A stretch of 64,000 nucleotides of DNA from Mytilus trossulus (taxonomy: Eukaryota). The stretch spans positions 48,918,001 to 48,982,000 of the forward strand of contig NC_086382.1 of NCBI RefSeq assembly GCF_036588685.1, written 5' to 3'. The notes beneath the pieces are model-generated. The model made no database searches and was not told where the DNA came from. It was given only the letters and a program-made list of their open reading frames with translations. Positions 18,511 through 51,000 of the stretch are shown piece by piece. The first letter of the stretch is position 1. Each line of letters begins with the position of its first letter. A program made the translations under genes and the position numbers.

Positions 18511-19056
18511 TCTATTTATTAATTGAAAGTGGACTTTCAGTAACTCCAAGTTTTTCTATTGTAGCTGCTTTCATTATATGTCTTAGAACTTATCTGAATT
18601 TTTTAGCTCCTTTTCATTTAATTTTTTGTTGTACTTGTATTTAACAGTCCAAGGTGAGGGTTATATTTGTGCGCTAACTAACATGTTGAAGTTCATTGCC
18701 GGTCCCGCACCAGGAACTTGTCTTTTATTTTGATTTATTTCTGCAGTTATATTTATAGGCAAATCAATTTGTTGGTTTTCGTATTTTATGTTTTACCAAT
18801 TTTTATTTTTGGTTACTTTACATTTTTGGTTGTGTTGATTGTTGAAGGTCTAACAGTTACATCCTTGTCCCTCGAGTTTTGATTGATTTTTGTTTCATAT
18901 CATTGACAACATTTTGATTTTTTTGAAATACTTAGGCTTTTCTTCCTCATGCATAGATAATTTTAGCTGTATTTGGCAACACTTTTAGGAATTTTGGATC
19001 GCAATGCTCTTCAACTTCGTACTTTATTTGGCTTTTTTCAATTTTTTTGGATTCGA

Positions 19057-19099
19057 GCGTCACTGTTGAGTCTTTCGAGACGAAACGCGCGTCTGGCGT
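19057..19099 (+). ncRNA. Minimal type I hammerhead ribozyme motif (core variant CUGUUGA) in a retrozyme/Penelope-like repeat unit (~18933-19135)
   Basis: GCGTCA-CTGTTGA-GTCT(TTCG)AGAC-GAAA-C(GCGC)G-TC-TGGCGT. All stems pair, but A6 is replaced by U. Confidence 0.75.
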
Positions 19100-19431
19100 A
19101 TATACTAGTCCTGTTTTCTATGATGAGTTTATTTGCAATGAGATGCCTTACCTCTGCATTTCTAATTTTAACAATTTTCCAACATTGAACATTTTCTTTA
19201 TATTAAATAGCTGTTATTTTAGGCTGCACATTAATGTTGAAGGGAATAGAATATCTCCAGACAATCGACCCAAAGTTACCAAAAAGCAAGAACATAAACC
19301 TAGGTATTTTGTGACATGTGCGAATCCTAATTTGTAGCTTTGTGGGATTTGTATAAGATACGATAAAGTCAAACAGTGCAAGTTTCCGCTAGTGTATAGA
19401 TAAGACTTCGATTTGTACTAGTCAACAGAAA

Positions 19432-22400
19432 ATGGAGTCATTTCGTCTTGTATTATCTGTCATTGGTAAGATCATTGAAATATTATGTTGTAATGGTACA
19501 CTACGTGAATACTGTTGGAACAAAAAAACACGAAATTATTTTAAAATCCAAATATTCATTATAGGTTTTAGTAATAGTAACTTGAAAAAAAAATCAAAAT
19601 TTTCCTGTGATGCTTTTGTTATTTTACGAATGACACAGGTAACCGCGTAAATTCATTCAAAATAGAAAAAAGGAGAAACTTGTCAATTAAATTATTGCAT
19701 GATGACTTTATATTAAAGACACAGCTTTTGTTTCTACTGTAATTAGGATCTGTTAGATTACTATGAATGGTTTATTTTTATATTTAGTAAGTTTGGCTCA
19801 CCTTGGATTACCAGTACTAAGTGATCATAAGTTCTGTGCCTATGCCTTCAAGGAGAATCCATTTGCCTGTCAGTATCCCAAAGTATACCAAAGATGTGGA
19901 CACGAATGTGATAAGAGACAATGTAAGTCGTACAGAATATAAAAGGTAATAAGGAATCTGCATACGTCAGTATCATGTGGTATATCTCTTACATTATAAA
20001 TTTCCTGTTACAAAACCTTGAATTTTTCGAAAAACTAAGGATTTTCTTATAGATTACCTTAGCCGTATTTGGCACAACTTTTTGGATTTTTGAGTCATCA
20101 ATGCTCTTTAAGTTTGTTGGCTTTACAACTATTGTGATCTGAGCGTAACTGATGAGTTTTATGAAGACGAAACGCGCGTCTGGCGTAATGATTAACAATC
20201 CTTGTATTTTTGACAACTATTGATTTACGTTGGATTACGGAAAATTAAAAATCCGATTTTACACGATTCAGTTGAGAGTATTATTAAAGAGTCAAGACAT
20301 TTTACAAATAGTCCTTTGAAAAAGTTAACTGGTTTACAAGGCAAAATCATAACATTCACTGTACCAATTTTGAAGAACCAGTAGAAGATTTCGACAATTT
20401 AACCACATTTTCCTCTTTACTGATACTCAAAACAAGACGCTGACGAACTGATAAAAAACAAAAAGAAACAATCAAAAGTAAACCCGAATTCGAATAAAAT
20501 CGATAGCTCTGCACGAGGGAGATACAAAACACCTGTGTGAGATAAGTTACTGGGCGAAATCTCTAGGAATGAACTCCTGTATTACTTTTCATTCTGCAAT
20601 GCCGAAATAAAGGCTACAGTAGTATACCGCTGTTCAAAAGTCATAAATCGATTGAGAGAGAAAAAAAAAAACCCAAAACAACCGGTTTAAAAATTAAAAC
20701 CGAGAGATACACATTAAAGATGAAAACAACGGAACAACAGAAAAAATGAAGTGCATTCATTTTCGTGTTTCGTTTACACGTGCACATATAGTGGTATTTC
20801 CGTTAACACCAAGTCATCAAATCAACATCCTTTCACTGTTTAAAATCAACATATTCCAATTCAATTTTGTTTTGCACACAAAATTTTAGTTCTCAAACTG
20901 ATTGTCTAAACACGTTTTAATATGAGATTTAAAAGATTCATTTCTGTACTGAAACTGGTGATTTGCAACTATAAAACATATCGCAATGTTTGAAACGCCC
21001 TCATGATAATTATATAATATAAATGAACAAAATTTTAAAACCTTCGAAACTATTTATATAATCAAATTTAAGAACTTGTTTAATCTTTTCATGGCAGGTC
21101 TCTTTTTAAAAGTGTATTTTCAAGCTAACTGTAATAATATTCAAACATTCTTAAAAAAAGAACCAATGAACATGTAAGTGTTTCGGTTCTCGTATGAAAT
21201 TAGACACCGATTACTTTTAATAGTCTTTCTGTGTTGTGATATATAATGGTGCCTAAACTCTACTTTTAAGTTTTTAATATTTTTCTGAAAAAATAAATTA
21301 AGGAAGAACATTGTTATCGAATTTCAAGATTAATATCTGCAACTTGCACGGACCAATGGATATTTTCAGACTATTAATGAAACAACGAGAAAAGCTGTTT
21401 GGTTCACTTCATTTGAAATATGATACTAGGGTACAGGTACAAGTCAGATTGATTCATTAACAATGTCAATATTATTTTACAGTAAGCTGCTTTAAATGTT
21501 CATCCGTTGAAGACCCAAGTCATTGTCAAACAACTACTACATGTGGACCATCTCAGGTTTGTAAAATTTAACTTGAAATAATCGTCTTAACTTGAAATTA
21601 AAATTCAACATCTACATACAATATACATGTCTGAAAATACAATTTATTTTCTTTTTTTCCTTATGAACAGACCACATGAATTACTACCAATTTTAACTCT
21701 TTTTTTTATGTAAACAGGTCCACATATAAGTTTTATTCGCACAGTAAAGTAATATATTATTATTATTATTTCAGATCCGAAATTCTTTATAGTGTTTTGT
21801 ATCATATATATAGCAGTCTTTGAAGTCCGTACGGTGACCTATAGTTGTTAATTTCTGTGTCACTTTGGTCGGTGGAAAGTTGTATCATTGACAATCATAC
21901 CATTTCTTCTTCTTTATATTTGATACATGATTTTTATGACTTGGACCTCAACAATAACATGTGTTTGTTAGATTGAGACAACAGCAATGTATATGCACTT
22001 TTAATTCGCGTTGTAATAATTTTCACGAATTCAAATGCAGCTGACGTGTATCAAAAATGTATTAAATAGATGCCATCGGAACTTTTACTGAACATGAATG
22101 TTATAAAACCTTGCTTTTCAATACATTTCTCCTATCGACCCGTGTAACTTATAAAACAACACCAATGACCAATCAAGGATTACGGGATGGAAGGTCGTAA
22201 ATAATGCGCCAAACCATACATGACAGCTTTATTGGACAACGTGTAAAACTTAGTCAAGTAAATGAGCATCTTTGTTTGTATTCACTATCAATTCATGTTT
22301 TAATATTTTAGGACGCGAAATTAAATTTTTGTGGGCAGGACTTAGTTCGTGAAATAAATTCACGCGGACAAAAATATATTTACAGTAATTTATCGATGTT

Positions 22401-25400
22401 CTAACGTCACATATTGATTAAAAGAATTCAAATGTAGTTAACAAACTCCAGACAATGTTGATCGGTATTTCGTATGGTAAAAATAACAATAGTATAATTA
22501 TTAAAGTGTTATCCCTATTTGTATTTTGTATGCATAGGCGTGCTCAATGACAGGGTTTATAGACCAAAGTTTTCGTAAGAGATATGCTCTAGGATGTGTC
22601 AATACAACGGTAAGCTATTAACATATTTTCCATTCATTACTTGGTGAATTATTTTATCTCAGAATACTTAGAAATTGATTTGAAATTAAAAATGTCTTAA
22701 CAGAACAACACCCTTAGACAATGCTGATCAGAAAAGAATATGGCTATTTTTTGTAAGTCCAATTTGGTTATACACTTTTTAAATAGGAATAAATCTTTTT
22801 GAATGGGAACATTCTATCATTATCTTTTTCTTTTTAAGTAAGTAAAACTTATTTAGTGAAGTTAATGAAGCAAAAGAAAAAAAACCCAGATATTCGAAAA
22901 AATCGAGTAAAAAAAATATACCGTAGCAAAAAAAAGAAAATGACGAAAAGACAACAACATATTACAAAATACTACTGTAACAAAGAAAACGCAAGGCTTA
23001 TCACATTACACATATATAGTGATATGATCTGATCTGGAACATTCTTCCTACGACACATGTGGTATTTAATTTTTATCACATACTATAATTTCTTATCTCA
23101 TTATTATAAATTGTTTTATCTATACAGCAATGCAATATTTTCCATGAATCACGACACACAAGGAACGAACTACATTTGCCTGGATACTGCTGCAAACAAG
23201 ATAAATGTAATTCCAATCTGGTCAAACCAACGGATCCCCTGTCAGGTAACTCAGCATTAAAATAATTTTATCAGGTTGTTAAACGGGTTCTTTGTACAGT
23301 CTGATTTAATTCTAAGGGACTTTAAGTACATGTAAATTAAATTTCATTGTGTGCGCACATTTACAGCAAACTAATGTAATGTTTTTGGTACAAACATTCC
23401 TCACGCAAATAAAAGGAAAACATTGTAACAAGGTTTTTGTAATTGGATCAATTGAGGTATCAAATACTAGAATTATAAAATTAAAAAAAACACTCAACGC
23501 TTTATGAGATGTTAACTTGAGATGTTAGACTGCTAGGCCACTCAGGATAAGAAGCAACATCCATGTTTATGATTGATGTTCAAATAGTTATAAGTCAAAC
23601 AAATAATTTAAGCAAATAATGAACTGCTTATATTTTCCAATGTCTACTGCTTAACTAATGTGTGCAAATTGGATTGCAATAAAGAACATGATATATACTC
23701 AAAGTTTCTCTCGTCATCATTTTCAGTATCTAAAGAATGCCGTGATGCGACACCATATGCATGCCAATATATGTTAGATAAAAACCAGAATATATGCAAC
23801 CATCACGCTACAACTCGTGAAATATGCGCAGCCATGTGTGGAGAATGTCGTATGTACTGTGTATATTATGTAACTTTTCCAATTATATTTAAAGTATCGT
23901 CATATATATTATGAAAATATTTACTATGATCAAGTAGGATAGATCATTATGACAATTTGTCTTTAGATTTTAGATTTTCCTTTATATTTATTTGATACTA
24001 TAAGTCCTTCAATATGTAGACCATGATCCACTTGTTCAAGTTCACCATAGCGGACGATTCTGTGAATCTCAGAAACAATTAACATATTCTGAAAGAGGGA
24101 AAAACGATACCAGAGGGACAGTCAAACTCATAAAACGAAAATAAACTGACAAGGCCTGGCTAAAGATGAATAAGACAAACAGACAATTAACAGAACACAT
24201 GACAAAACATAGAAAAATAAAGAATAAAAGGAAAGGATGACAACATGTTGATACTAAGTAAACGCTTAGCCTTTTTTCAGACATTTGGAAATGAGTTTTG
24301 AAAATTTGCTGTAAATGTATTGTACCAAAACCAAAATGCCTTTGATATGATATCTTGACAAGTACCTGCATCTGTACTCGTCTTCTTTTACATTAACATA
24401 CACATAAAAAAAATCTGGCATATCATTCTTAAGTTAGTCGCATTGAGTTTGTGGCATTGTTTTAATTGATTTTATTTCGTCAATATGATGGTTTGACGAA
24501 TCTCTATGAGACAAATATTGAGTATTCAAAGTTTTGCAAAAGTTGGTGTACATTTGTACTGTGATTGTGACATAGAGAACAGCTATACAATCATTGGTCA
24601 CATAGGTGGTCAGTGAGTGTATGATTTGTGTGTAGAACTTTGAGTCGTAAATTTTGAAAATATCTTTCCTTTATTGTTACTTAGTGTTAACATAACTATA
24701 TAACTATTCAATTTTAATAGTTTTTTTTATGTTATGCTGCTTATCATTTTTCATTGCTCGTATGATATAAATGTCATATTCATTTCTTTTTTAGCAAACC
24801 TTGTTATGGTATTTGTTATGACTATATGTTGAGTTGTATTGTTATATTGGCTGACATGTTTGTTGATATATTTACAGATGGTCCACTGAGTTGTCTTAAC
24901 TGCACTGATATTGGTGAGAATGAGATATGCCAGACATTTGAATCATGTGACAATGGAAAGGTTTGTGAAATACCAATTATTAACTCGTCCTCAATATGCT
25001 ATTTGAGTCAAATAAACTTTTCGATTAAATGAAAATGATTTTGGAGTTCAGTATTTTTGTGAGTTTACTTTTTGATACTTGTAAATACTTCATCTAATTT
25101 TGGGAATCATAAATATTGGTCACATAACATTTAGGTCATCTAATATTCTTGCAATTTATGGAGTGAAACTAGGACAGGGATAGGCATATAATAATTGTGA
25201 GTTAAGTGATGAAAGATATTGCTGTTTTACGAAATGTTCCTTTAATCTTTCTGACTGATAATTTCTTTTCTTAGCACAGTAGAGTGATATGAAAAGTTGC
25301 CGTTGTAATTTAAATGAAATTCACGACGTTGGTATATTAAGTGAAAAAGCGATAAACAGATTACCATTGGTCATTTCAACTCGATTGGTTTTCTCATTAT

Positions 25401-28400
25401 CGAATATTTACTAAAAAAATATTTGGGATTATAAAAATAAATAGTATAATAAAATTTTTTTTTTGGAATCGACAACTTTTAACTGTTGTCTTTTTCTTTT
25501 CAGCCATTTCGTTGTCAATTTTTTTTTATATTAAATTTGAATGTCCCTCTGGTATCTTTCGTACTTTTTTACAGCATATTTAACGGTTGTTTCGCCATTT
25601 ATGTGTTTTGTTAAGGTTGAACAGCCAAACATTAACAAGCTTTTACATATTTTACTTTCAGAAGTGCATTATTGACCGTGAAGTAAACATTCAGACCATG
25701 GCAGTTAAATACAGGATGGGGTGTTCCACTGCAAATGTAACCATTATAAGTTATCAATTCATTTAAACCATTATATCTATACTGATATGTTGGTTTTATA
25801 ATTTTTGCGCCATTTATAAAAAAACCAACATAAACTTGTTTCTTGCAACACGGTATGCTGATTTTAATATGGGTAGGCATTATATTTGTCATTATACTTT
25901 TTCATGCTGCATTGTACGATTTATGATTTTTACAACTTACATCTAACTTAAAATGTAATGTATTGATGTTTTTATATCCATTCAATAAAATTTCCTTTAA
26001 ATTGAGAATTACCAGTTGAAATTGAATTAACAACCACACAAGTTCATAAAAAATTGAAAGTGATTTTGAACAATGAAATATTTTGAACAGGTCTGTTCTG
26101 CAATGGCGAATGGTCATGACGCGTCTTGTTGCAATACGCATTCCTGTAATAACCAAGTTTTGCTGCTTTCAAAACTGTCTCAGACAACAGTTCCAAGTAC
26201 GATAACAACAACACCAACAACGACAACTCAGCCAACTACGACAACACAGACAACAACAACAACTAGGCCAACAACGACAACACAGACAACGACGACAGCT
26301 CAGCCAACAACTATAACAACAGAGCAACCCACCACTACAACAATCAGAGTAACGTACCCAGCGCGTATGATATATATTTATTTTCTATTGATATCTTTCC
26401 TGATGTTTCCCATCGAATATTGCTGTATTGGCAAATTCATTCGAAATTTTGGGTTCTTAATGGTTTACAACTTCAAACGTTTTTTTGCCTTTTGAACATT
26501 TTGTATTCGAGCATCACTGATAAATCTGTATTATCGTTACGAGCGCCTTAAGAATACAAATACATGTCTAAATCTGTATCAAATCCTTTACGTTTTGAGT
26601 GGTAAACTTTTCCTTAGATGAAATTAAAAACAAAAATGTGACCCCAGTATTTTTGCATCGAACAGTTATATATAATTAAAGTTCTAAACATCTTTAATTC
26701 CTTAAATTTACATAAACGGTCATTTCTGATAATAAGACAACTTTTGTTTAGCTAGCTTTATTTTTTTTTCAGTGAACTGTGGAGTAGATTTTGTACAAGT
26801 TGGTGGGACATGTTATTATATTAACCCAGAAGGCAGGACAGAGATATGGGAAGATGCAAAGGTATAAATTGTATGATTATTGATCTGCATAACTATGTAT
26901 GTCTTGTTATATCAAAAGTAAATTTTAAATGTGTATCAGTGCAATGTAAAACGTTATGGTGAGATTTGGTTGCCCGAAAACATGTTTTAAAGAGGAGCGG
27001 AAGATACCAGAGGGATATTCAAACTCATAGATAAAAAAAAAAAATGACAAAGCCATGGCTAAAAAAAAAAAGACAAACAGACAAACAATATTCTAATGCA
27101 ATTATTTTGTAACAATTGTTCTGATTGGATTACAGCTAGCGTAAAATTCTCTATCTCCTTGTCTGTAACTAAGGAAGCCGACATTTTGAATTTCGGAATG
27201 TATTCCCATGTTTATTCTACAATAATAAACAAAAAACTCACTTGTTGCGCCCTAAAAATCTTCTTTTTAGCAAATTTTATTACATTCTGAAGCGGCACAG
27301 AAGCCAGAAAACGCCAGGTGTTTATGTTTGACGCCGGAAGCATACATATGACGTCACATAGTGTAGGGATCAAAGAACATAACATCTTTTCGCGGAATTT
27401 TCTTTAAAGAACATTTTACACTGAAATAATGATTAAAATTTAATCATAAACTTGTTTTGCATTAGAATAGAGATAATTGTATTGTATTTGAAGCTTTGCG
27501 GACGTCCATCCGCGTCGCCAGGTAAAATAAATTTGCGACAGTAAAACTACCGATGGACGTCCGTAAAGCTTCAGATACAATACAGTTATCTCTTAATTAC
27601 TCAAAACACAACATAGAAAATAATAATAATGTACCAAATTCGTTGTGTGTCTACCCACACGTAGGAGCATGTAATGAAATGATGACACTACCGGACGACG
27701 TTTCGGTCTCTAGTCAAGAGTATCATCGGATATACACACGTAGTAAGCATTTTTGTGTAAAAGTAAAATATATTTAACAGGTTTTTGTTTTTGGCTGTTT
27801 GTTGAACAATGATTTGTTTTATCACTAGGTATACATGGACAGATGTATTTGGTGCATTAATTTGTAGCGGTTTGATCAGTTCAGAATGTTTTAAAATTTC
27901 TCATATGTTATGGACTTGTAACTGTTTCGATTTGAACACTTACGACGACTTTTCTGTAGACGAAAAGTACAATCGACGTACTAAATTATTTGCCTGGCAT
28001 ATTTGATGAGTTTACACAAACCTTGGGTCGAGGTCACTGCTAGTGGAATTTTCGTACATGAAACAATTATTAGCAAAGATGTTAGTACTTCTGTTTTGAG
28101 CACAGGCACTTGTCTCAGAAATTTAGAAAAATGTTAGGTGGTGACGAAGTTCCGTTATATGCCGCTTTACAGGCTGTCAACCTCACTAAAGCTTGTTATA
28201 TCGTAAATTTAAATTGATTTATCTATACAATGGTGTATAACATGCCTACATTTGTTGTCGGAATCATCCGTAGCAATCCTACCAAAGTATGTCAATCGTA
28301 ACAATTTTGCAAACCGCTGAAGAATTGGCAATAAACGGCCGCAGTAAATGATTTATTATAATAATTGTTGTAAAAATAACTGTTAGTTTTCGTATGAATA

Positions 28401-30916
28401 GAACTTATCATACAGTTAGTAAAAATGTATGATATACCGTGAAAAAATCTAACAAGTGTTGTTTGTGGTATGTCTAAGTTACAAGTTTTCCCATGACGTC
28501 AATTATGTCTTGCAGACTCTCTCTTGACTTTACGTATGAAATGAAACAAGATCAGATAACTCCGAGAATCATTTAGACTTTCCCATAGAATTGACCAATC
28601 GGAAACCGAGATATACAAGGAGCATGACGCGTTTATTGCCAATTCTTCAGCGGTTTGCAAAATTAAAACGATTGACATACTTTGGTAGGATTGCTACGGA
28701 TGATTCCGACAATAAATGTAGGCATGTTATACACCATTGTAAAGATAAATCAATTTAGATTTACGACAAAACAGGCTTTAGTGGGATTAACAGCATATAA
28801 AGCGGCATATAACGGAACTTCGTCACCACCCAACATTTTTCTAAAATGCAAGTTAAATACCTTGTGTTATAATAAGGTATATAGGATTTTTTTTTCTGAG
28901 ACAAGTGCCTGTGGTTTTGAGATATAATATAACTGCAGATACATTCATATTTGGAAGATTGTAATGTTCCTAAAACATTGAATTATTCGAAGCCTTTAGG
29001 TTTTTCTATCCCCATGCATATATGACCTTAGATGTATTTTGCCACATTTGTTTTGATTTTTGTTTCAATAATCTTCAATTTCATACTTGTTTATAGCTTT
29101 ATAACATTTTAGCAAAATGTAAATGCGGCATAAGACTATAAGCTAGACATAAAACCAGGTTTAAGCCATTATTTAAAATAATAAGAAATATTGGAGTTGC
29201 TGGCCTTAACTCTCTACAATAGGTAAACAATTCTGTCTATTTAGTTATTTTTCTGTAAAAAGCTACGTAAAGCTTAATTTTATATATTTTTTTTTAAAAA
29301 GCCGTATCAATGATATAAAACATATGATTTTCTTCAAACAGAGGAAAACTTTTACAAATAAATTACTCTACTCTAAATTGATTAAAGATATCAGCCGATT
29401 GTTTTTCTGCTATTTTTTTAATTCAAGACTGTGAAAATAGCCAATCTACACTGAAGTAGAATACTTTTTTTTATTGAACACACTGGTGCGATAGCGTGGA
29501 CTTACACTTAAAGGTGGTACCAAACACCTTTACTTAAATTAATTCGACTTGTTTAATTTTCATAAAATTTTGACAAAATGCTTACTTTGACCATATGACA
29601 AAAATATGATTTAAAAAAAAAAACTTGAACATCACACTTTATCTGAAAATTTTTTCGTTGGACAAATATAAGTAATTAAAACGATCAGCTATTTTTTTCA
29701 GAGTTATCTCCCTGCAGTGTTATGTACCACCTTATTCATCTCTACGAATAAATTAATACAAGCAGCCTAACATTCTATTTACTCTTTAAACCGTCTGTTG
29801 AACTCTAGGTGACTATTGAGCTTCTTTTTTCGGGTTGCTGTTTAATTTACGTATATCCAGCATTTCCTCTAAATGATATGCTTTTAACTTTTCTTAACAA
29901 AACATTCATATGTCCTTTGTTTCCATGCGTTTGGTATGTTTGCTTTTGTCATTTGTTTGGAGACAGTGCGTTTAGAAGCGACTTTGGAGTTCTGATTTTT
30001 TGCCATTTCACCTTTTTTGGTAACAAAAATACGAAAGTTTTCTTGATACTTTTGTCTTTTTTAATGGCATTTTTCATTCATTGAATCTCTCCTGGAATTT
30101 CTTTTTTTTTCAGGTTATCTGCATGGCATTAGATAGTCAGCTGGTAGAATTTGAGACAGAAAGAGAATTAAAGGAAATGAAAAATTATCTTATATCCAAA
30201 CACGGTACAGTTTGATTATAAAAGTTACAGTTACATAACAATAGTCAAAGTTGGCAAAGATCTAGAATTCACGTCAACATATGCAACTTATATGACATGA
30301 TGATCAGCTAGATTTTTCATATTCAAATGTAAAACTCTATTAAAAAATAAAAGTTCTTTGTGAGAAAATCCACATACAATTATAAAAGTTTAAATCAAAA
30401 TAAAACACCATTTGTATCAAGTGATATAGCTTAAACAGTTATTAAACCAATATATTATAGGGTTACCATTCGAAAAATGCAACCGACAATTTTTTCAATA
30501 AATGACACAGAAAATTTATTAAATTTCATAAAAGTTCATTAATTATTCAGGAAATATCAAGGAAGCTATCAAAATATTAAGAACAGACAGCATTTAAACG
30601 CAAGGTGACATATGGTGGTCACTTTGTGGTTGATATTTTATTGACGCCATTATCTAATCTTTCTTTTATTCCTGATGGTGATATTTTTACAGGTTATGAC
30701 CGACATTATTCATATTGGATTGGTGGGAAGAAAAACCCTCAATCATCAAGCTGGGAATGGGATTCTAGTAATTCACCTATTTTAACAACTGCATGGTTCG
30801 GAGACAAAGACAGTAACACGCAAGGAGAATGTTTAGAATACGGAGCAATGTATGATTTTAAGTGGTATGGTGGACGATGTCACCTTCAATCTAATTTCAT
30901 TTGTGAAAAGAAATAA
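19432..30916 (+). CDS. Secreted mosaic protein: signal peptide - ShK-like - Ly6/uPAR(LU) - ShKT - LU - Thr-rich stalk - C-type lectin-like domain, 12 exons, 463 aa
   Basis: Exons 19432-19465, 19788-19922, 21483-21556, 22538-22609, 23128-23245, 23727-23849, 24878-24960, 25662-25736, 26091-26364, 26773-26861, 30114-30204, 30693-30916; total 1392 nt, open frame. Hydrophobic N-terminus MESFRLVLSVIVSLAHLGLPVLS. Two 10-Cys LU domains (LSCFKC...CCKQDKCN and LSCLNC...CCNTHSCN). ShKT domain CRDATPYAC...CAAMCGEC. CTLD with CYY, WEDAK, WIGG and FICEK. Confidence 0.85.
20143..20186 (+). ncRNA. Minimal type I hammerhead ribozyme, intact core, in repeat unit ~19995-20220 (intron 2 of the ShK/LU/CTLD gene, sense)
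   Basis: GCGTAA-CTGATGA-GTTTT(ATG)AAGAC-GAAA-C(GCGC)G-TC^TGGCGT. The CUGAUGA, GAAA and GUC boxes are all present. Predicted cleavage after 20180. Confidence 0.85.
20607..20750 (+). repeat. Dispersed repeat family D (AAATAAAGGCAACAGTAGTATACCGCTGTTCAAAA...)
   Basis: Also at 33292-33480 (+) and 41147-41332 (-). Confidence 0.75.
27093..27596. mobile_element. Non-autonomous element with short inverted repeat plus terminal long hairpin (Crypton/HINE-like architecture)
   Basis: TCTAATGCAA (27092) / TTGCATTAGA (27457). Hairpin with 42-bp arms at 27469-27510 and 27552-27593. Confidence 0.6.
28101..28913. mobile_element. Long-TIR MITE, P-element-like
   Basis: Termini CACAGGCACTTGTCTCAGAAA...TTTCTGAGACAAGTGCCTGTG. 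Inverted arms about 28101-28337 and 28631-28913. Perfect 8-bp TSD GTTTTGAG (28093-28100 and 28914-28921). Confidence 0.9.
29511..29732. mobile_element. Kolobok-like MITE
   Basis: TIR AAGGTGGTAC(C/A)(A/T)AACAC at both ends, in TTAA/TTA context. Confidence 0.7.
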
Positions 30917-39000: not shown

Positions 39001-42000
39001 ATGTTTGTAAAATATTTACCTCAGCATTTTCTATACGACATTTGATATCGTTTGATATATAGAAATTTTCTCCAAACACTGAGATATAGTTGCAGGCTCG
39101 GCTTCCAGTGTCACACAATGAATCGTTAGACATCTCTGTAGCAAGAACAGGTGGTGCAGTCATATTAACACGGCAATCTTCACCAGTAAATCCAGAATAA
39201 CAATTGCAAAAACCTGTAACATGCACCAAATGAAACAAAGCAGTCAGTTCCATTTCAAATTAGAAAAGTATAGCCGTTATCTTGCAAACACATCTGAATA
39301 TTGAATATTCGTTAATTTTTACAAAACATGCTGAACAGCTGTGATATCATTATGAAGTAATAACATTTGAAAACGACAAATCTAACATAAATTAACAATT
39401 TGACGTACACTCATATTTTATAGTTATATGTCAAAAATCAAACTGTAGGCAAGACAACATCCCTGAAAGGGAGAGCGGACAAAATCGCTATCTCAATTAA
39501 CGTCTTTAATAATAAAACCATGCAGCATAATAATTGTTTTTCCAACTTAGCCTTGTAAAGCTAAATTATAATGACAAAATTGGTCTGTTTGTATTTTGCC
39601 ATGCAATAAAAGTCGTTGGAATAACTTAAGCTTATACAAAAAAAATATTCACTTATAAAACAAGTGCCATCTGAAATACTTCTATCTACCGTATTTGGTA
39701 TCACATCAGCAACACGACAGGTGCCACACGTGGAGCAGGATCTGCTTACCCTTCCGGAGAACCTGATATCATCCCTAGTTTTTGGTTGGGTTCTTGTTGT
39801 TAATTCTTTAGTTTTCTATGTTGTGTCATTTGTACTATTGTTTGTCTGTTTGTCTTTTTCACTTTTAGCCATTGCGTTGTCAGTGTTTTTTTTTAGATTT
39901 CTGAGTTTGAATGTCCCTTTGGTATCTTTCGTCCCTCTTTTAAAATCAATAGATTTTTAATGATTTTAATTTTTGCATTGAAGGGGCAAAACAATGTATC
40001 ATCATGCCTTCTTCATCTTTATCAGTTAATAAGTAAGTAAGATAAGTTAACGAAAAAATTCCGGAGTTATAAAGTTAAATATAAGCTTCTTGGCTCTCGG
40101 TTGATAAACATTACTCTGTACTCGGAAAACGAGAATAATGCTCTCGAAACATCATATACAGTTTTTTATTGGTTGATCTCTCAGTATCAAATTTATACTT
40201 TTTACGACATAATATTTAAAAAAAAAATTATGTAACTCTCTAAAACGTACTTTCTACACAGTCTCCATTTTTCACACCATTGTATTTACATTCGAATGGA
40301 CAATCGTTTTCAGTTATCAGCTGGGCTATACTAGTTCCATTAGCACTCATTTCGGAATATAGGCTGTTGTTAGTACGGACTTCGTTAATACATTGAGTCT
40401 TAAACAATTCAAAGGAATCGGCCATATATTCATCTGTTCCAGCAATCTAAAAATTGGAACCATATCTTTATGATAAATACTGTTTTGATTATCTGAACAT
40501 TATTTTGAATTAGATATGGGAAATATTAACCTCTTTTGATTCTCGGAGCATATATATTCCACTTGATTCTTTCCTAAATATTCAGCACTTGACAGAACAT
40601 AATATAAAAACGAATACAGGCTAGTACATATCCTTGAATTGGCAACCAGCTTCAATGCATGTAATTTTTATATGGCTATTTTAGAGGGGTGTGATATCAT
40701 TGCTACAACTGTTGAGTTATTTACAAAAGTTTTACGGTATACACCATTGATTGGTTGGCAGATAGGATGTGTCAAGTTTCAGCTGATCGCAGACATGGTT
40801 TCGCTATATTATATTGTTAGAAATATGTACAGCTGTGGACGTTTTTTTGTTGTTTTTTTTTTTATCCCAGGCGTTGATTACCTGAGCACTATTTGACACA
40901 ACTGTTTTGAAATTTTGGTTCTCAATGCTGTTCATCTTTTTACTTGTTTGACTTTCTAACTATTTTCACCTGAGCGTCACTGATGAGTCTTATATAGACA
41001 AAACGCGAGTCTGGCGTATCAAATTATAAGCCTTGCACGTTAAAGACACCCTTGTAGATTTCGAAAAAGAGTAGGCTAATGCCGCTACAAGGCAGCACTC
41101 GCACCCGCAAAGTAGAGAAGGATTAATATAAGTTGCCAAAATATTTGTTATTCTCGTGGTGTTTTGTCTGATGCTTGGTCCGTTTCTGTGTGTGTTGCGT
41201 TTCGGTGTTGTGTCGTTGTTCTCCTCTTATATTTAATGCGTTTCCCTCGGTTTTGGTTTGTTACCCCGATTTTGTTTTTTGTCCATGGATTTATGAGTTT
41301 TGAACAGCGGTATACTACTGTTGCCTTTATTTCTCAATCCAATGTAAAATAAATATGTTTAAACTATAAGCCTGTTACCTTTGATAACTATTTCTCTGCC
41401 AATAAAGCTTGTTAATTTCCGCTTTGAGTTAGAACTATTCGCTGAATTGTTTTCTTTTGATTTGTAAATTCACAATGGATTTGGCCTTTAGAAATATAAT
41501 TTTGTTTCTTATACAGATCTAAAAATAATTTATTTTTTAGTTTGAATGTCCTTCTGGTATTTTTCGCCCCTCTTATGTAGCCTTTGTATAAGGTCAATAT
41601 AGGATATATCGACCCAAAGGAGTTTATTACTCCATTTATCGTAGAATTTGTATGGTCGTCATTAACGGTCTTGGCTTGAGTTATCCTACTACTTAACGAC
41701 AGGAAACAGTGATAACTGATGAGACATTGATGCCGTTAATGTTATTACCCTTATATTCACAACACAATTTGAAATTGCAGATGAAGCATTGACATTAGAT
41801 ATTGATGAACAGGCGTCAAATAGAATAGATTCTCTGAAGTAACTATTACAGGCATCATCAGCGGCTGATTCATTCCAACCATTCTTCCATCCTGGGTCCT
41901 GAAAAAGTGAAACATACTTGTATATGCTTTCAATCCCATCGGTTGTCTTGTCTTTCTGTTAAGTATCTAACTTGATTAGGGCGTTAAAAGACATGGCATC

Positions 42001-45000
42001 TAAGACTAAAAATAAATGAGGTCAAACATTATCGGGAATACACTTATAGGTTAAATGAACAACCGCAACATTGGTTTTGAAAAGAATGAATTTTGTTGCA
42101 TGCTTATACAAGAATGAGGTTATTGTATACTTGTCATATCTTTTTTAAAATTATGAAGCAAAAATGTTCTCCAAATTGTTTTTTGATTTGGCTTTCCAAC
42201 CGTTTTGGTTAATACAAGCCTCACTGATGAGTCTAACGTAGACAAAACGTGCGACCTTTGTACAAAATTATAAACCTTGTATCTTTAGTGTCTTTTTTAC
42301 TCATGATCTATATGTTTGTACTCACTACTACTGGTTCTTTAATATATGCTACAATGTCTGGTGAAACATCAATTGTGACATCATCGTCATCGTCAGCGGA
42401 GCGTTTGCTTCGAATGGAGCATGGTTCCCTTCCCCAATTTAACGGAGGGCAGGTCGGCATAGTTTCTTTCCAGGAACAATCTACATTTGGCGACAGTCCA
42501 TCTTGGGTTGAGTTCATACATGAGCAATACATAAAAGACTGACTTAGTTTTTCTGTTCTTTCTTTCTCCATAAACAAACTGTCATTTGCGGGAACACTGT
42601 AATCAAAACCCGTTTTAATGCTAAAATCATTTTGAGGATTACATAACCTTATTTTCGTTTTCGCAGATCGTTACATAGAAAAATCACAGTACGACTGGTT
42701 AAACTTTGTGATGCGAGAAGCTTGTTTCATACGCATATATCTAAATATTTTTGATTATTCATGAGGCCTAACATACAAAACAAAACAAAATTGTCTATAT
42801 ATAGGTGCTTGTTTTAATAAAAACCACTTCTTAGGGTATATGATTTGTTAGGAAGTATGGAAAAATTACCAGATCAGTTTTCATCAGTCCATTTGCATGT
42901 TTGCCAAACAATTAACAAAAAACAAAAAAAAGTACATGTATGTAAAAGAGTAACGAAAGATACCAAAAGGTACAGTCACCATGGCTAAAAATGAAAAAGC
43001 AACAAACGTCAACCACTAAATTACAGGCATGGGACAGGTACATACAAAATGTGGCGAGGTTAAATATGTGAGCAGGATCAAATTCTGCCATCACCTGGAA
43101 TAGTAGTCTAACATTACAACATAAAAACGATGTCAGTTGACAAAGTTGCACTCATAAGTTTAGAGTTATGTTTTTGTGCATGAATTAGGCCGTTATTTTT
43201 ATTTCGTTTGAATTGTTTTACACTTTTGATTTCAAGTGGTCTTCTGTAGCTGACTTTAAGGTATGGGATGTGCCCATTATTGACATCATTACAGTGAACT
43301 ATAGTTGTTAATTTTGGTGTCATTTGTTCTCTTTTAAAGAGTTGTCTCATTGATATTCATACAACGTCTCCTTTTTATATCTTTTAAGTAATGATTGTAA
43401 TATGTTTCTTTCTATGAAGAAATAACACAAAAAATGTGGTACACACTGAACAATGCGCGTAGCGGGTTATGTAACAGTGAGCACCACATTTTGTATGTTA
43501 TTTCGAATAGACTGACAAAATATTACAGTTAGTTCTTACAATTAAATTTTAAATTCCATTTTAAACCGGCGAAAATCATTAAAAAACGTCCATGACGTCA
43601 TGGTGACAAAACAACAGCAAATCAGGAGACGCGTTACATCTAAAATTGAATTATATAAGGTTAAACGTTGACTTGTCATCAATCAATCGAGAATATCATT
43701 ATGAGGATGCACTACAATTCAGTGTTTCATCCCTTCTGAAGGAAACTTAAATGAGACAGAAAACCCAACAGTATAAATGATTTTGATGATAGACTAATAT
43801 TTACAGGGTCTAAACAATTACAAGAGAAACAATAAAGAGAGGTAAACATTAGGTCTGTGTTTTAACTGATGTTTTGAGATACCTACAATTCACTCATTAA
43901 GTTCTAGGGCATCTCAAGTTTAACCTTTCTCACAATGATTAATGTATGTAACAATGAAGGTGTTTACAATGAAAAAGTGTTTCTATATATATATAAAATG
44001 TGGGATGATTGCCAATGAGACAACTTTCCACAAGAGACCAAAATAACACATAAATTAACAAATATAGGTCGCCTTACGGCTTTCAACAATGACCAAAGCC
44101 CATACCGCATAGTCAGCTATAAAAGGCCCCGAAATTTCAATGTAAATCAATTCAAACGAGAAAACTGACGGCCAAATTTACGTTAAAATTGAATAAAAAA
44201 ACAAATATGCAACACATAAACAAACGACAACCATTGGAAGACAGGCTTCTGACCTAGGCCATACACACACACATATATAATATAGCGGGGTTAAACATGT
44301 TAGCAGGATCCCAACCCTCCCCTTATCGGGGACAGTGGTATTACAGTACAATTAAGGAACGAACTATAAAAATCAGTTGAAAAAGGCTCAGATTGACAAA
44401 AAAACTAGTGAACATAAACGGGTACTTGAACATCTCAACAACAAAAAGACACGAGGTACACTGAGAGTACTCGCAATTAACTGACAGCTATTTCAAAGCC
44501 TCTAACAACTAATAAAAAATAATACATCGAAGAATACATTAATCAATCTGTACACATCCAACATCCAATGGATTTCGTCATAAACAGTCAGAAAAAAACA
44601 TGACCTTGTGTGAAACCAAGTTACAGGTATCGACAGATTTAAGATCCATGAATGTGAATATGCACAAATCATACAAGTAATATTAGTTTGCCTCTAATTA
44701 ACCGATAAAAAAATCAATATTTACACAAGTAAACACAATAATCAATGATTTTTTACAGTGTTGAATTGGTAACCTTTTAGAATAAGTCTATTTAACGGAT
44801 AGACAACTTTAAAAAGGATCGTTTCTGAATTTTCTGGCACGGTTAACAATATTTCCATAAAAATAAGATGTGCTATACAGTTAGAAATAAGATAAAACTA
44901 AACTTTAAAACTTAAACTTTATATTTATGGAAATATTAATGTCATTGGGCCTTCCAGGGTTTTTATTGTACTTATTGTATATTTTCTTAAGAATATCTTT

Positions 45001-48000
45001 GAATATATACCGCCAAGTCCTTGCGAAAGTCGTTGCATTATCATACACTACTCCATCGCGTCCAGTGAAATCATCTTCGTAATCTCTATTCCACGTTCCG
45101 CATAAACCTTCTGTTTGATATCTATCGGTTCGAGACATAGAAATATATGCATTTATTCGTCTGTTTAAGGAGATCCAAACATACACACGAGATCCCGTTG
45201 GAAGAGCGATCTGCAAATAAACACATATATCAAGTGAAAATTTGAGTATTGTAAGACTGTTGATCAAAGTTGCCAGTTATATAACACAAGAACAAGGTAA
45301 AAGTATCATATATAAAATACACAAGTGTGGTATTGCACGTACAAATTAAGATTAATTATTAAATGAATATATGTTATGCGTTTTCGAGAAATACTCTTTA
45401 AAACCATCTACGTATATTTTACCTCATATCCACCCCAGCGACTGTGTACTTCTAAATATTCATTTCCGATTCCACAGTTTAACCTACGAATGATCCACTT
45501 GGTAGGTTTGCCACATCCATAGATAATGAAAACGTCAGATGCAGCGCGCACCGCTATAGCGCAATGTTCTGTCCAAGTATGATCTTTTTCATATCTTCGT
45601 TGGATAGTATGAACCTAAAAAATAATAATATCAAATATTTCCAATTCTTACATATACCTTGAAAACATTTCATAAAAGTAGATAATAATGTGGCTTTTTT
45701 AAATATATATCTTAATACAGGAATGACGGTACCATTGTAGATAATATTGCTGTTATCATATCTGTTTGGATATGCAATTTATCCTTTTTCAAATCCATGT
45801 GTCAATCACTGTTTATTCTTTAGTTTTCTATGTTGTGTCATGTGTACTATTGTTTTTTTGTTTGTCTTTTTCATATTTAGCCATGGCGTTGTCAATTTGT
45901 TTTAGATTTATGAGTTTGATTGTCCCTTTGGTATCTTTCGTCCCTCTTTCAATATGTTCATAGTGTTTTTATCGTAATAGATGGTATTAAGGATTATACC
46001 TTTTTGATTGGCGGACAATAATCGTAAGGCGTTTTTTTTTTCAAGTGATGTTTTTTTATCAATTAATACGCAACAACCCTGGCTGTACGCTATCAGGAAA
46101 ACATAAACAACAATCCTTAGAAAATTTCAAAACAATACAAACAAAAAGTTTAATTTGACGCGTAAATTTTCTGTTCTGGCATACTAATGTATTTTGTAAA
46201 ATATAATTGTACTATATTTTGTAGCTTGTTTGTCTATTAAAGGTAGCACATTTAACAGGATATAATTTGAACTTAAATTATTTTTGATTATGGAATTTGC
46301 TTGATTTCCTGTTATTGAAATTTTTAATAAATTCCATGTTTATTCTATTCTGAAATTTTCTGTTCTGCGCACAACACTTTCTTTTTCAAAGAAAATAGTA
46401 TTTTTCAATAGAATGTACTGTGCCGCGCACAACGCTATCTAACCAAAAAACATTGTATTGAAAGTGTTATGAACCGCTCAAAGATTATAATGCCAAATAA
46501 ACATGGAGTTTATTAAAAAATTTAACACAAGAAATTATGCAAATTCCATAATTAAAAATAATTCCAAGTTTAAATAACAGACTGTTATTTATCAATCTTG
46601 TTAATTGAACAACTCATTTCAACGACGGACTATGCACACATGTACATATAATATGCATTTAATTTGATAGTGATTACACAATTTCACAAATGAAATACTT
46701 GCATCTCGGTTTTTAATGAATTTGTGCTCAATAAGTCAGAACTATATGAGGAAAACCAACGATCAATTGTTTGCTTTGGGTTTTTCCTCATTTAATTATC
46801 AACTATTCGAAGAAAAAAATGAACATTTTGTTGTCCTGTATATTTGCTAAAAGTTTTGTCTTTCGATATCAAAACTGTTCGTCGTATGCAGTCGGCAATC
46901 ATATTCATTTTTAAATGAACTTAAACTCTCGTTGGCCTACTGGTTTAAAATGTTCTTTGAGTCTAACTCCATGGATTATTCACGAGTACATAAGGAAATG
47001 CCTGTATCAAGTCCGTTTTATGTAAGTTGTTCTATTGGCTTGATGTTTGAGCTTTTGATTTTGCCATTTAATAGAAAAAACTTTCCGTTTTGAATTGTCC
47101 ATAAGAGTTTTTTTCAAAATAATCATATATTATATGGAACCATCATAGTGTGTTTATGTAAAAAAAAAAAAAAGATGTGGTATGATTGCCAATGAGACAA
47201 CTATCCACTAAAGACCAAAATGACACAAATATTAACAACTATAGGTCACCGTACGGCCTTCAACAATGAGCAAGGCCCATACCGCATAGTCAGCCATAAA
47301 AGGTCCGATAAGACAATGTAAAACAATTCAAATGAGAAAACTAACGGCCTTATTCATGCAAAAAAATTAACGAAAAACAAATATGTAACACATAAACAAA
47401 CGACAACCACTTTGTAGTAACCCCTTCTGATAATGGGGTGTCTGTTCGGCTGTTTATGTGTACAAATACTCAGCCACGTCCGGTTAGAATAGGGACATTT
47501 AATTTCACGCTCTCCATTCAATTTGATGTGTAATGAAGAATGAATTTCGCTTTATAATCCTGGTACTTTTGATAACTAATAAGCAATGGCAGTTCAAATT
47601 TACTCTATCTCAATCCCGGACGCCATTTAGTACAGGACCGGTTTAGTGTATTTATTGGAAATTGATCTCGTTCTGAACATGCATAATATATTTGCCATTG
47701 GTCATTTCACAACCAACAGTCAATAACTTCAACTGCCTCTCCTGCCGGAGCACCTGAGATCCCCGAAGTTTTAGGTTAGGTTCGTGTTGTTCAGACTATT
47801 TAGTTCTACATTGTGTTTTTTGTACTATTAATTGTTTGTTGGGCATTGTCATAGTATTGTCAGTTTATTTTCGACTTATATGTTGAATATTCCTCTTGTA
47901 TCTGTTCCCTACCAATTAAAATCTTAAACTTCTGCATAACAACAGAACGACTGTCTCAATGTACCACCCATTCATCTTCGTGTGATGAACACCATTTTCA

Positions 48001-51000
48001 AAAAGGTACATAAGCAATTTTATATACTACCATTCCATCAAACAAAGTCCGGAATAATGTAGGCCTATACTGATAGAAAAGTATAATTGTTTGTTTTAAT
48101 TCAATTCATTCTCTGTAATATGGATTTGAGTATTTTGTACTTGCTGTTTACTGGTATGAACAAATTTTTATGTACAGGCAATAACAACCTATTTACAGAT
48201 CAATACAAATTAAGTGTGAAACCAAAGATCATTGAATAAAACTAATTTTTTTTAAGTTTACAGTACCGCCGTTGAAATTTAAAAATTTAGATTTAAAAAC
48301 ATGCCTTGAGTAAGATTTAAACAGATAATGTTGAATACGACATTGAATCTGAAAATGTGAAAAACTAATTATTAAAAATCCAAATTAATTTCAAATTATC
48401 AAACGAATAACGAGTTTTAAACATTAAACGAATAAGATAGAATAATACATCTTTATATTTTTACATATATTGTCGTGTATTATAATTACCTCTATTGGTT
48501 TAGTTTTGTGTTTGTATAGGACAAATTCTCCCTGGTCATGAAAATCATACGATCTAAAATAAAACACAACAAAATCATGTATTTTTTAAAGGTTATATTC
48601 ATAAAAGTTATTACAATTTTTGTCCTATGAGGGTTTAGTATCATAGCGATTACTTATTTATATACCATAATGTGCGTTAACACAATTTCTTTTGTTGTGT
48701 TTTGTGTCAATTTTCAAGTAACACCTACAAGTAAATAAAAACAGGAATACAGTTTGGTGTCAACAGGAGTACTGGCTGTTTAAAAACAAACCCATCAAAC
48801 GTTTCAAATACGATAACAATAATAACCGGGCTTCGTAAAGATGAAAGACTGAGACACTTTCTGTTTGAATCAGAATGTGTTTTCCCGCAAAGTATACTTT
48901 TTTCTTTGCATTGCATCTGTCATTATGAATTTTAATAGCCTTATAATTGTTGTAAAATTTCTTCTCAGGGATTGTCGTTGTACTGTGGATTCATTAATAT
49001 TCGTTGGATACCAATTTTCGTGGATTTCGTGGGGACAGGGGAACCACGAATTTAAATGTTCAACGAAATACAGATTTTCTATAGGAATGTATGCAGAATT
49101 TGCCAAAACAACGAATTTACATATCCACGAATATGTGATTTTTCATCAATCCACGAAAATTGGTACCCACGAAAATAAATGAATCCACAGTAGTATACAT
49201 AATTTTTCAGTAAATTTTCCTTCATCTAGTACAGTGGTTGTCGTTTGTTTATGTGTTACATATTTGGTTTTTCGTTCATTTTTTTTAACATAAATAAGGC
49301 CGTTAGTTTTCTCGTTTGAATTGTTTTACATTGTCTTACCGGGGCTTTTTAAAGCTGACTATGCGATGTGGGCTTTGCTCATTGTTAAAGGCCGTACGGT
49401 GACCTATAGTTGTTAATGTTTGTGTCATTTTGGTCTTTTGTGGATAGTTGTCTCATTGGCAAGCATACCACATCTTCATTTTTATATTGAAAAGTTAAAG
49501 CCAGTTTTGACTCACATTTATTAAGTGGATATTAAATTGAGTGGCATTTTATCTAAGAACAATAATCTATTATTACTAAAGGTCATATAAATACTAACTG
49601 CCAATCAAATGTAGAAAACCAAGGATCTGTACCAGTAAAACACCATCCATACCACCACCAGTAATCATCTGTTACATTGTCATTCACTACATGTACCTGT
49701 GAAAGGAATTTGTGTTAAAAAATGACTTTTTTTGTAGTATTATCATAATCTTACGGAAAAAGTATATAACAATTATATATAAAGATGAGTACCAATTATC
49801 AGGTTGTCTGCATATTGATATTTTACAATCTCTATATGCAGATAGCCTGATAATCGATTCATCGGGTCTTTCAAGTGTTTTGTTTTTTGCACTAGCAAAT
49901 CGGAAAATGACTTGATAAGTTGGGGTCAAACATATCAACGTCGGTTCAACATTATGAAATCGCTGATATGTACGTGTTAAAGTTATTTAGGCCGGGTCAA
50001 CCTATTTGCCATCACAAAGCCGTGATATTCAAAAGCTGAGCAGAGTGATATAGATAGTGCACGTTGGACGGCCGATAATCATCGATTATATACTTTTATG
50101 TGCATGTTCTGTAAAGGTTAATTCAGAATACAACAATAACTCAAATTCACACTATTTCGGTTAAAATTGTAAATATATAGTTCATAAGAATAAGATCAAG
50201 TAATACAAAATGATATTTTTAGATCTTTCTTTACTGTACAGTTTTGCTGTTTCTAGTTTATCTTTATCTATAATGATATTTAAGATAATAACCAAAATCT
50301 GCCAAAATCATCAATTCAGGGATAATTCCCTTAAAATCTGATACCTGATTTGCCTGAATATTTCAGTGCTGGTAAACTTTACCTAACGATTACTTAAACC
50401 TCTTGTGTGATTTGGTACAAATGCTTTAGTTCTTGTGATATTGGTCAACAAGAATGTGTCCAATGGACACGGATGCCCCACTTGCATTACCATTTTCCGT
50501 GTTCAATGGAGCGTGGAATTGGGAAAAAATAATTTGGCATTAAAAGAAGAAAGACCATACAATAGGGAACATGTATACTAAGTTTCAAGTTGATTTGACT
50601 TTAACTTCATCCAAAAACTACCTAGACCAAACACTTAAACTTGAAAATCCCATTTTTATTTTCTATGTTCAATGGACTTTGGAATTGGAATCAAAGGTCA
50701 AACTTTGCTTTAAAGTAAGAAAGATCATATCATTAGGAACATGTGTACTTAGTTTTAAATTGATTGGACTTCAGCTTCATCAAAAAATACCTTGACCAAA
50801 AACTTTAACCTGAAACTCGCACTTTAATTTTGTATGTTCAGTGGACTGTGGAATTGGAGTCAAAAGTATAATTTGGCTTTAAAATTGGAAAGATCATATC
50901 ATAAGGAACATATGTACTAAGTTTCAAGTTGATTGGACTTCAACTATATCAAAAACAACCATTGCCCAAAAAACTTTAACCTGAAGCGGGACGAACGGAC

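Follow-up and report, generated by a model that had tools for sequence, protein, structure and literature searches.

Introduction

The non-long terminal repeat (non-LTR) retrozymes of metazoans are non-coding tandem repeats of 170-400 bp that carry one hammerhead ribozyme per unit. They have neither a long terminal repeat nor a primer-binding site or polypurine tract, and their GC content is low. In the mussel Mytilus galloprovincialis, about 5000 type I hammerheads have been found in repeats of 350-390 bp, and two subfamilies were distinguished by the motif and its flanks (PMC7229834). Both self-cleavage and circle formation have been shown for this species: a cloned genomic repeat cleaves itself with a kobs of about 0.1 per min, the released monomer is circularised by RtcB, and the circular retrozyme RNAs account for up to 1% of total RNA (PMC7229834). 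A Penelope-like or other non-LTR enzyme has been suggested to mobilise these elements (PMC7229834). Here we analyse a window of 64,000 nucleotides from the genome of Mytilus trossulus (contig NC_086382.1, positions 48,918,001 to 48,982,000, forward strand; coordinates below count from the first letter of the window) that holds six fragments of a hammerhead-bearing repeat, referred to as copies A to F. Copy B, which has a complete hammerhead core, lies within an intron of an expressed gene encoding a C-type-lectin-type protein.

Judged by its sequence, the family in the window is the non-LTR retrozyme already known from M. galloprovincialis, since it has the same hammerhead, the same flanks and the same unit size, and since the 22-nt tail of copy A is present in the published clone. 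We consider it very probable (about 0.9) that A, B and the four further fragments are old, dead-on-arrival insertions of this retrozyme. For Mytilus, the family has already been published together with its ribozyme and circular RNA, and the instance in this window is an ordinary one. A sequence-only reading of the same DNA had proposed a dispersed retroelement family with a catalytically intact ribozyme in sense orientation inside a host intron, perhaps regulating the host gene. It named the motif "minimal type I", a loose label given that the source paper terms the retrozyme motif canonical type I and reserves "minimal" for the variants of Penelope-like elements (PMC7229834).

Results

Retrozyme copies in the window

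The copies were measured by BLAST against a natural unit of 355 nt that runs from cut site to cut site (positions 1349-1703 of the sampled genomic locus L034). All comparisons were made against natural copies, and no element consensus was used. Unit positions given as 166->355->45, for example, run from position 166 through the cut site and on to position 45 of the next unit.

18903-19139, + strand: copy A, a 5'-truncated solo retrozyme fragment; unit 166->355->45; 77-80% identity to the L034 unit (BLAST)
19057-19099, + strand: hammerhead of copy A; 28.1 bits with the Rfam model RF00163; A6U
19994-20221, + strand: copy B, a 5'-truncated solo retrozyme fragment; unit 152->355->41; 84% identity to L034 and to other array copies
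20143-20186, + strand: hammerhead of copy B; 25.6 bits with RF00163; matches the strict pattern
40857-41041, + strand: copy C, a solo fragment; unit 201->30; hammerhead at 40974-41017 with G12A; 84% identity to L034
42128-42297, + strand: copy D, a strongly decayed solo fragment; unit 234->42; 70% identity
56181-56456, - strand: copy E, a decayed solo fragment; unit 106->25; 73% identity
28914-29110, + strand: copy F, a decayed fragment inside the host gene, without a recognisable hammerhead part; unit 119->310; 68% identity

The two same-strand repeat units with type I hammerheads that the sequence-only reading had recognised are therefore real, as A (18903-19139) and B (19994-20221), although they do not end in the hammerhead as it had stated, since a repeat tail of 41-46 nt continues 3' of the ribozyme. 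Identity of copies A-F to the natural 355-nt unit lies between 68 and 85%. With gaps counted, copy B is 84% identical to array copies, that is, about 16% diverged. The sampled copies closest to A are those of loci L022 (86.6%) and L025 (82.6%), and the 22 nt of its tail (19118-19139) are identical to the published M. galloprovincialis clone. A resembles the cloned M. galloprovincialis subfamily and B and C resemble the L034 type. Each window copy is shorter than one unit and has at most one ribozyme. A unit can be set free only by cutting at two sites, so that A and B, with one ribozyme each, could never give rise to a circle, and neither can any other copy in the window. The window copies derive from the retrozyme family and are not themselves functional retrozymes, as none reaches the two units that define one.

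The family in the genome and the ends of its insertions

When copy B was used as a genome query, 4,838 candidates were obtained, of which the best other than itself were 83-85% identical over the full length, and many were paired at a distance of 353-357 nt. In the sampled loci, successive hammerhead motifs are spaced at 354-358 nt, and L034 contains nine motifs exactly 355 nt apart. The exact core-intact motif occurs 16,563 times in the 1.3-Gb genome (8,408 + 8,155), while a reversed control pattern occurs 0 times. These motifs form arrays, the longest of which has at least 45 units, and also occur at many scattered single sites, so that the earlier proposal of a dispersed hammerhead retroelement family is supported, the family being the published mussel non-LTR retrozyme. 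Among the matches listed, the first 100 motifs extend over 2.95 Mb of the genome sequence C1 and belong to about 25 separate loci; by a rough, uniform extrapolation this would amount to the order of 10,000 loci genome-wide.

In keeping with the low GC content of metazoan retrozymes, the unit is AT-rich except for a GC-rich hairpin module of about 70 nt. This module (L034:1394-1466, unit positions of about 46-118) folds as a stable branched hairpin, the folding z-score of the unit being -2.3, and ARAGORN detected no tRNA in it.

Insertion ends were determined for 48 insertions from 90 sampled loci (L001-L090). In 45 of the 48, the 3' end fell within unit positions 38-51, immediately ahead of the GC-rich hairpin module, while the 5' ends were spread over unit positions 1-350 and the lengths ranged from 111 to 1040 nt. 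For window copies A, B, C, D and E, the 3' ends are at 45, 41, 30, 42 and 25, and the 5' starts at 166, 152, 201, 234 and 106, respectively. Since the GC-rich module (about 46-118) lies just past the fixed 3' end, it is missing from the solo fragments of the window, and indeed from every one of the window copies. The flanks of the sampled insertions showed no evident (TA)n target. We infer that the combination of a fixed 3' end with variable 5' ends is the footprint of reverse transcription from one fixed point on the RNA.

We propose the following origin for the window copies. Tandem arrays of the non-coding 355-bp unit, with one type I hammerhead in each, are transcribed, the hammerheads cut the array transcript into RNAs of unit length, and the tRNA ligase RtcB closes these into circles; cutting and closure have both been shown for M. 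galloprovincialis (PMC7229834). Reverse transcription would then be carried out by the enzyme of another element, for which a Penelope-like element is the candidate. It would always begin at one place on the RNA, 38-51 nt beyond the cut site, and stop at variable distances. The resulting insertions would have one common 3' end, any 5' end and a length of anything from under one to many units. Copies A and B would be insertions of this kind, of about 0.7 unit, that have since diverged. During this decay A would have lost A6 of its core, while B would have kept its core by chance, lost a stem I pair and acquired a weakened stem II.

Since Penelope-like elements also carry type I hammerheads, occur as short-tailed partial tandems and coexist with retrozymes in mussels (PMC7229834), the copies might instead be terminal-repeat fragments of an autonomous Penelope-like element. 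We regard this as highly improbable. The copies align whole (230-245 nt) to the non-coding 355-bp unit of long pure arrays and match the published retrozyme clone, and their helix III has 2 bp and a tetraloop rather than the single pair of Penelope. Furthermore, a scan for stop-free segments over 14-32 kb showed that neither A nor B contains or adjoins a long open frame, and that no frame for a reverse transcriptase (RT), with or without a GIY-YIG nuclease, lies next to them; no search for RT proteins was made elsewhere in the window. Two isolated matches of 27-33 nt to the retrozyme tail were also observed, at 47552-47578 (unit 13-39, 100%) and 41361-41393 (unit 10-42, 88%). These could be extreme 5'-truncated insertions, or the tail could be common to the retrozyme and an autonomous partner element.

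The hammerhead motifs

The Rfam Hammerhead_1 model (RF00163) has a gathering score of 34 bits. At the curated Rfam thresholds nothing was reported anywhere in the window, and the matches described here, which lie below them, were found by using an E-value threshold. In a search of 1.8 kb, the hammerheads of A and B matched the full model with E-values of 2.8e-4 and 1.8e-3, respectively; in the whole-window search the corresponding values were 0.01 and 0.064. The latter search gave a third match at 40974-41017 (23 bits), and a fourth, decayed hammerhead copy lies near 42223-42260. The covariance search recommended by the sequence-only reading thus does return full-model matches, but A, B and C (28.1, 25.6 and 23 bits) are all below the gathering score. 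In comparison, standard copies of the family pass it (42 of 74 scored), with 34.8-40.9 bits.

In all hammerhead copies the layout is type I, with helix I open. A strict pattern consisting of the core, GAAA, helix III and C17 was matched once in the window, at 20149-20180, and not at all in 100 shuffled sequences. The statement that 20143-20186 has every core nucleotide is therefore correct (C3-U4-G5-A6-N7-G8-A9, G12-A13-A14, A15.1-U16.1 and H17 are all there). C17 of copy B is base 20180, and the predicted cut would fall at 20180/20181. The hammerheads of A and B read as follows:

Copy A: GCGUCA-CUGUUGA-GUCU(UUCG)AGAC-GAAA-CGCGCG-UC-UGGCGU
Copy B: GCGUAA-CUGAUGA-GUUUU(AUG)AAGAC-GAAA-CGCGCG-UC-UGGCGU

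The core CUGAUGA had been assigned to both units. In copy A it is in fact CUGUUGA, that is, A6U, in a hammerhead whose stems I and II are intact. In copy B it is the stems that are altered: the change of C2.2 to A turns the second stem I pair (2.2/1.2), which adjoins the core, into an A x G mismatch, and the change of C10.3 to U leaves a U.G pair in stem II. Copies C and D both fail at G12 of the core (G12A), and D in addition has a change at U16.1 and has lost the 3' strand of stem I. The sequence-only reading had pointed to a stem II that differs between copies while keeping its pairing. All four versions that it listed are present, and yet what distinguishes them are single substitutions (C to U, which yields G.U) and alterations of the loop, with no compensatory double change, and two of the four belong to cores that are dead (G12A). 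Since the pairing is kept in the two dead-core copies as well, it cannot be taken as evidence of selection.

State of the copy B ribozyme

Of the 16,563 intact motifs in the genome, 14,370 have GCGUCA as their stem I strand and only 74 (0.45%) have the GCGUAA of copy B. All 74 are scattered singles, with 0 in arrays, which indicates that this variant does not propagate. The stem II variant of copy B (GUUU...AGAC) is present in 246 copies (1.5%), almost all of them singles. When the hammerhead fold was imposed, the energy was +2.6 kcal/mol in copy B, -5.1 in A, -6.6 in C and -5.7 in a standard copy, so that the fold of B is about 8 kcal/mol less stable than that of the standard copy. Free folding of A, B and the standard copy with flanks of 3, 40 and 120 nt did not predict even the active standard motif as a hammerhead; since it is uninformative for the standard motif, only the imposed-fold energies were used. 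From its sequence and the modelled fold, copy B is best regarded as having a complete core that sits in a weakened scaffold, and some residual activity may be possible. The description "catalytically intact" consequently applies to the core letters only, because stems I and II are weakened and the score is below the threshold passed by standard copies.

The host gene and the placement of A and B

RNA evidence was taken from the assembled contigs of four runs (X1, X5, X6 and X7) belonging to four studies, mapped to positions 18600-24500.

19432-19464, + strand: coding part of host exon 1; ATG at 19432, the start of a signal-peptide-like sequence running into exon 2; joint in X5
19787-19922, + strand: host exon 2, a cysteine-rich ShK-like module; spliced contigs in four runs; stop-free frame
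19923-21482, + strand: host intron 2, 1560 nt, GT..AG, which holds copy B; contigs of four runs

The joint 19922->21483 (GT..AG, + strand) is present in one spliced contig in each of the four runs, and the further joints 21554->22536, 22608->23127 and 23241->23723 (GT..AG, + strand) are likewise present in the contig of each run. The joint 19464->19787 was found in X5, with a loose end in X7. The host gene (19432-30913, + strand) is thus expressed, and its intron 2 is spliced out cleanly in four runs. Pfam reported no family for exon 2 at E <= 0.1; among the single exon pieces searched, it reported only a C-type lectin domain, in the piece 30581-30913 (E 2.1e-8). At the level of patterns, the downstream exon pieces show ShK-like and LU-like cysteine arrangements and a Thr-rich stalk. 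The RNA contigs also define small host exons at 21483-21554, 22536-22608 and 23127-23241 that the stop-free-segment scan had not flagged.

Copy B lies in sense orientation in intron 2, 72 nt past the 5' splice site and 1302 nt before the 3' splice site. Its placement in intron 2 of a gene with ShK-like, LU-like and C-type lectin modules, as the sequence-only reading had it, is thereby confirmed by the spliced + strand contigs of the four runs. This position, together with the complete core, could be taken to mean that copy B is an active intronic ribozyme that cuts the pre-mRNA after 20180, competes with splicing and so lowers or tunes the output of the lectin-type gene, much as the CPEB3 ribozyme or the conserved intronic hammerheads of amniotes might. 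Intronic ribozymes can indeed alter host expression (PMC10919898), and copy B differs from a natural array copy at fewer positions inside the ribozyme (3 of 44) than outside it (35 of 202). We nevertheless find this very unlikely, for several reasons. The excess of preservation is not significant (Fisher p = 0.11). The mismatch in stem I adjoins the core, stem II is weak, the model score is 25.6 rather than 34 bits, and the fold is worse by about 8 kcal/mol. Cleavage is slow even in standard motifs of the mussel, with a rate of about 0.1 per min (PMC7229834). Copy B is one of 16,563 core-intact motifs distributed over thousands of loci, so that sense intronic copies are expected by chance; as a rough inference, there would be hundreds to thousands of them genome-wide. 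Finally, intron 2 is normally spliced in all four runs. The proposed regulation of the host gene is accordingly not supported for a truncated solo fragment that is about 16% diverged and whose ribozyme is not significantly better kept than the rest. We conclude that the sense position of copy B in intron 2 is incidental and expected by chance. There is a slim chance that B acts as a fortuitous brake on this secreted lectin-type gene through partial cutting of nascent intron 2 RNA; if true, a host gene of an invertebrate would here be at the beginning of adopting a ribozyme from a retrozyme.

Several points speak against our reading of A, B and the other fragments as dead insertions. Copy B has lost no core nucleotide and none of the six CpG sites in its ribozyme, against a divergence of about 16% in the rest of the copy, and, although the trend is weak and not significant (p = 0.11), it is in the direction that purifying selection would give. 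A hammerhead with one mismatch in stem I can keep some activity. The penalty of 8 kcal/mol is only indicative, as nearest-neighbour energies model hammerhead junctions poorly. The RNA data, being assembled contigs, are blind to RNA ends and hence silent on cleavage at 20180. Target-site duplications were searched for around A, B and C and none was found, which is expected for old insertions, and the mechanism of insertion is drawn only from ends collected across the family. On our reading, copy B would at most cleave a small fraction of the RNA of this intron, and any effect on the host gene would not be a designed one.

Copy A is located about 290 nt upstream of the host ATG. It shares with B the 8-nt palindrome ACGCGCGU of helix III, on the same strand and with the cut sites 1087 nt apart, and hammerheads with a short helix III are known to dimerise in order to work in newts and the axolotl (PMC7229834). 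In principle, A and B might therefore form a double hammerhead through this palindromic helix III and release an RNA of 1087 nt around exons 1 and 2. We consider this barely conceivable. Copy A is upstream of exon 1, the stretch 19191-19387 is free of RNA contigs in all four runs, and there is no sign of a common transcript. Following the model of Forster 1988, cleavage at the site of B would be expected to need the A6U core of A, and cleavage at the site of A would need the mismatched stem I of B. In addition, invertebrate motifs whose helix III consists of 2 bp and a tetraloop have been reported to act as monomers (PMC7229834).

Contigs of family-like sequence are very abundant over A and B in the four RNA runs, and contigs show neither circles nor the source locus. 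Contig joints between A and B that go back or skip (for example 20083->19002) were considered as local circles and rejected, as they are contigs of other family copies that fit to parts of A and B. The high depth over A and B was likewise rejected as a signal of this locus: it is a sum over the whole family, and unrelated repeats in the same intron are even higher. Interspersed repeats in the host introns at 20570-20766, 21752-21948 and 23919-24312 have depths above those of the retrozyme copies, up to 78,000 in X1; these three are probably abundant families resembling short interspersed nuclear elements (SINEs) or miniature inverted-repeat transposable elements (MITEs) that are carried in many transcripts.

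Other features of the window

A near-perfect palindromic hairpin at 16758-16878 matches the plant MIR161 model on both strands, though with 38.6 and 35.3 bits it falls far short of the gathering score of 90. Rather than a microRNA gene, this is most likely an inverted-repeat element. A short tandem array of about 2.6 units of 169-170 bp is located at 50524-50970, and a further copy of this repeat is found 3.8 kb downstream, at 54617-54806. The Rfam search of the window reported no hammerhead match in either.

Discussion

The preferred explanation, old insertions of a known mussel retrozyme, makes the locus of use in two ways: it provides a quantified footprint of the 355-bp family, and it advises caution with intronic hammerheads in mussel genomes. 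As the family has more than 16,000 intact motifs in this genome, an intronic hammerhead with a complete core is what should be expected by default. Such matches should therefore be judged on the integrity of their stems, on array context and on conservation before a regulatory role is proposed. With regard to the spread of retrozymes, the fixed 3' end at 38-51 nt past the cut site, together with the random 5' ends, supports 3'-anchored reverse transcription.

The family may be compared with four groups of known hammerhead systems and their relatives. The amniote intronic hammerheads and the hepatitis delta virus (HDV)-like ribozyme of CPEB3 (PMC10919898) belong, like the motif of copy B, to self-cleaving ribozyme classes, and they too lie in sense within introns of protein-coding genes. 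Those ribozymes are single-copy, are conserved across orders or classes, and have measured effects on their hosts, whereas copy B is decayed, is one of more than 16,000 copies of its family, and shows no sign of either conservation or effect.

The satellite 2 of newts and the axolotl retrozymes resemble the present family in having tandem units of 330-350 bp with one type I hammerhead each and a circular RNA product. They differ in that the amphibian motifs need to form dimers, while the invertebrate motifs, including that of the mussel, cleave singly (PMC7229834).

With the minimal type I hammerheads of Penelope-like elements the family shares the type I layout and the palindromic helix III region, and with the elements themselves it shares partial tandems, a fixed 3' end and variable 5' truncation. 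In Penelope, however, helix III is a single pair and the element encodes an RT, while this family has a helix III of 2 bp with a tetraloop and is non-coding.

The closest likeness is to the retrozymes of M. galloprovincialis. The window copies differ from the array retrozymes of that species in being solo fragments of about 0.7 unit that are 15-30% diverged, with cores that are mostly broken, and the count of exact intact motifs, 16,563 in a chromosome-level assembly, compares with about 5000 in the 2016 draft of M. galloprovincialis. In other respects the two agree: they have in common the core, the GUCU/AGAC stem II, GAAACGCGCGUC and the UGGCGU that follows the cut, as well as tandem arrays, the flanking sequences and the size of the unit, which is 355 bp here and 350-390 bp as published. 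Copy A extends this agreement to the individual repeat, since it has both its 22-nt tail and long stretches in common with the genomic repeat cloned from M. galloprovincialis.

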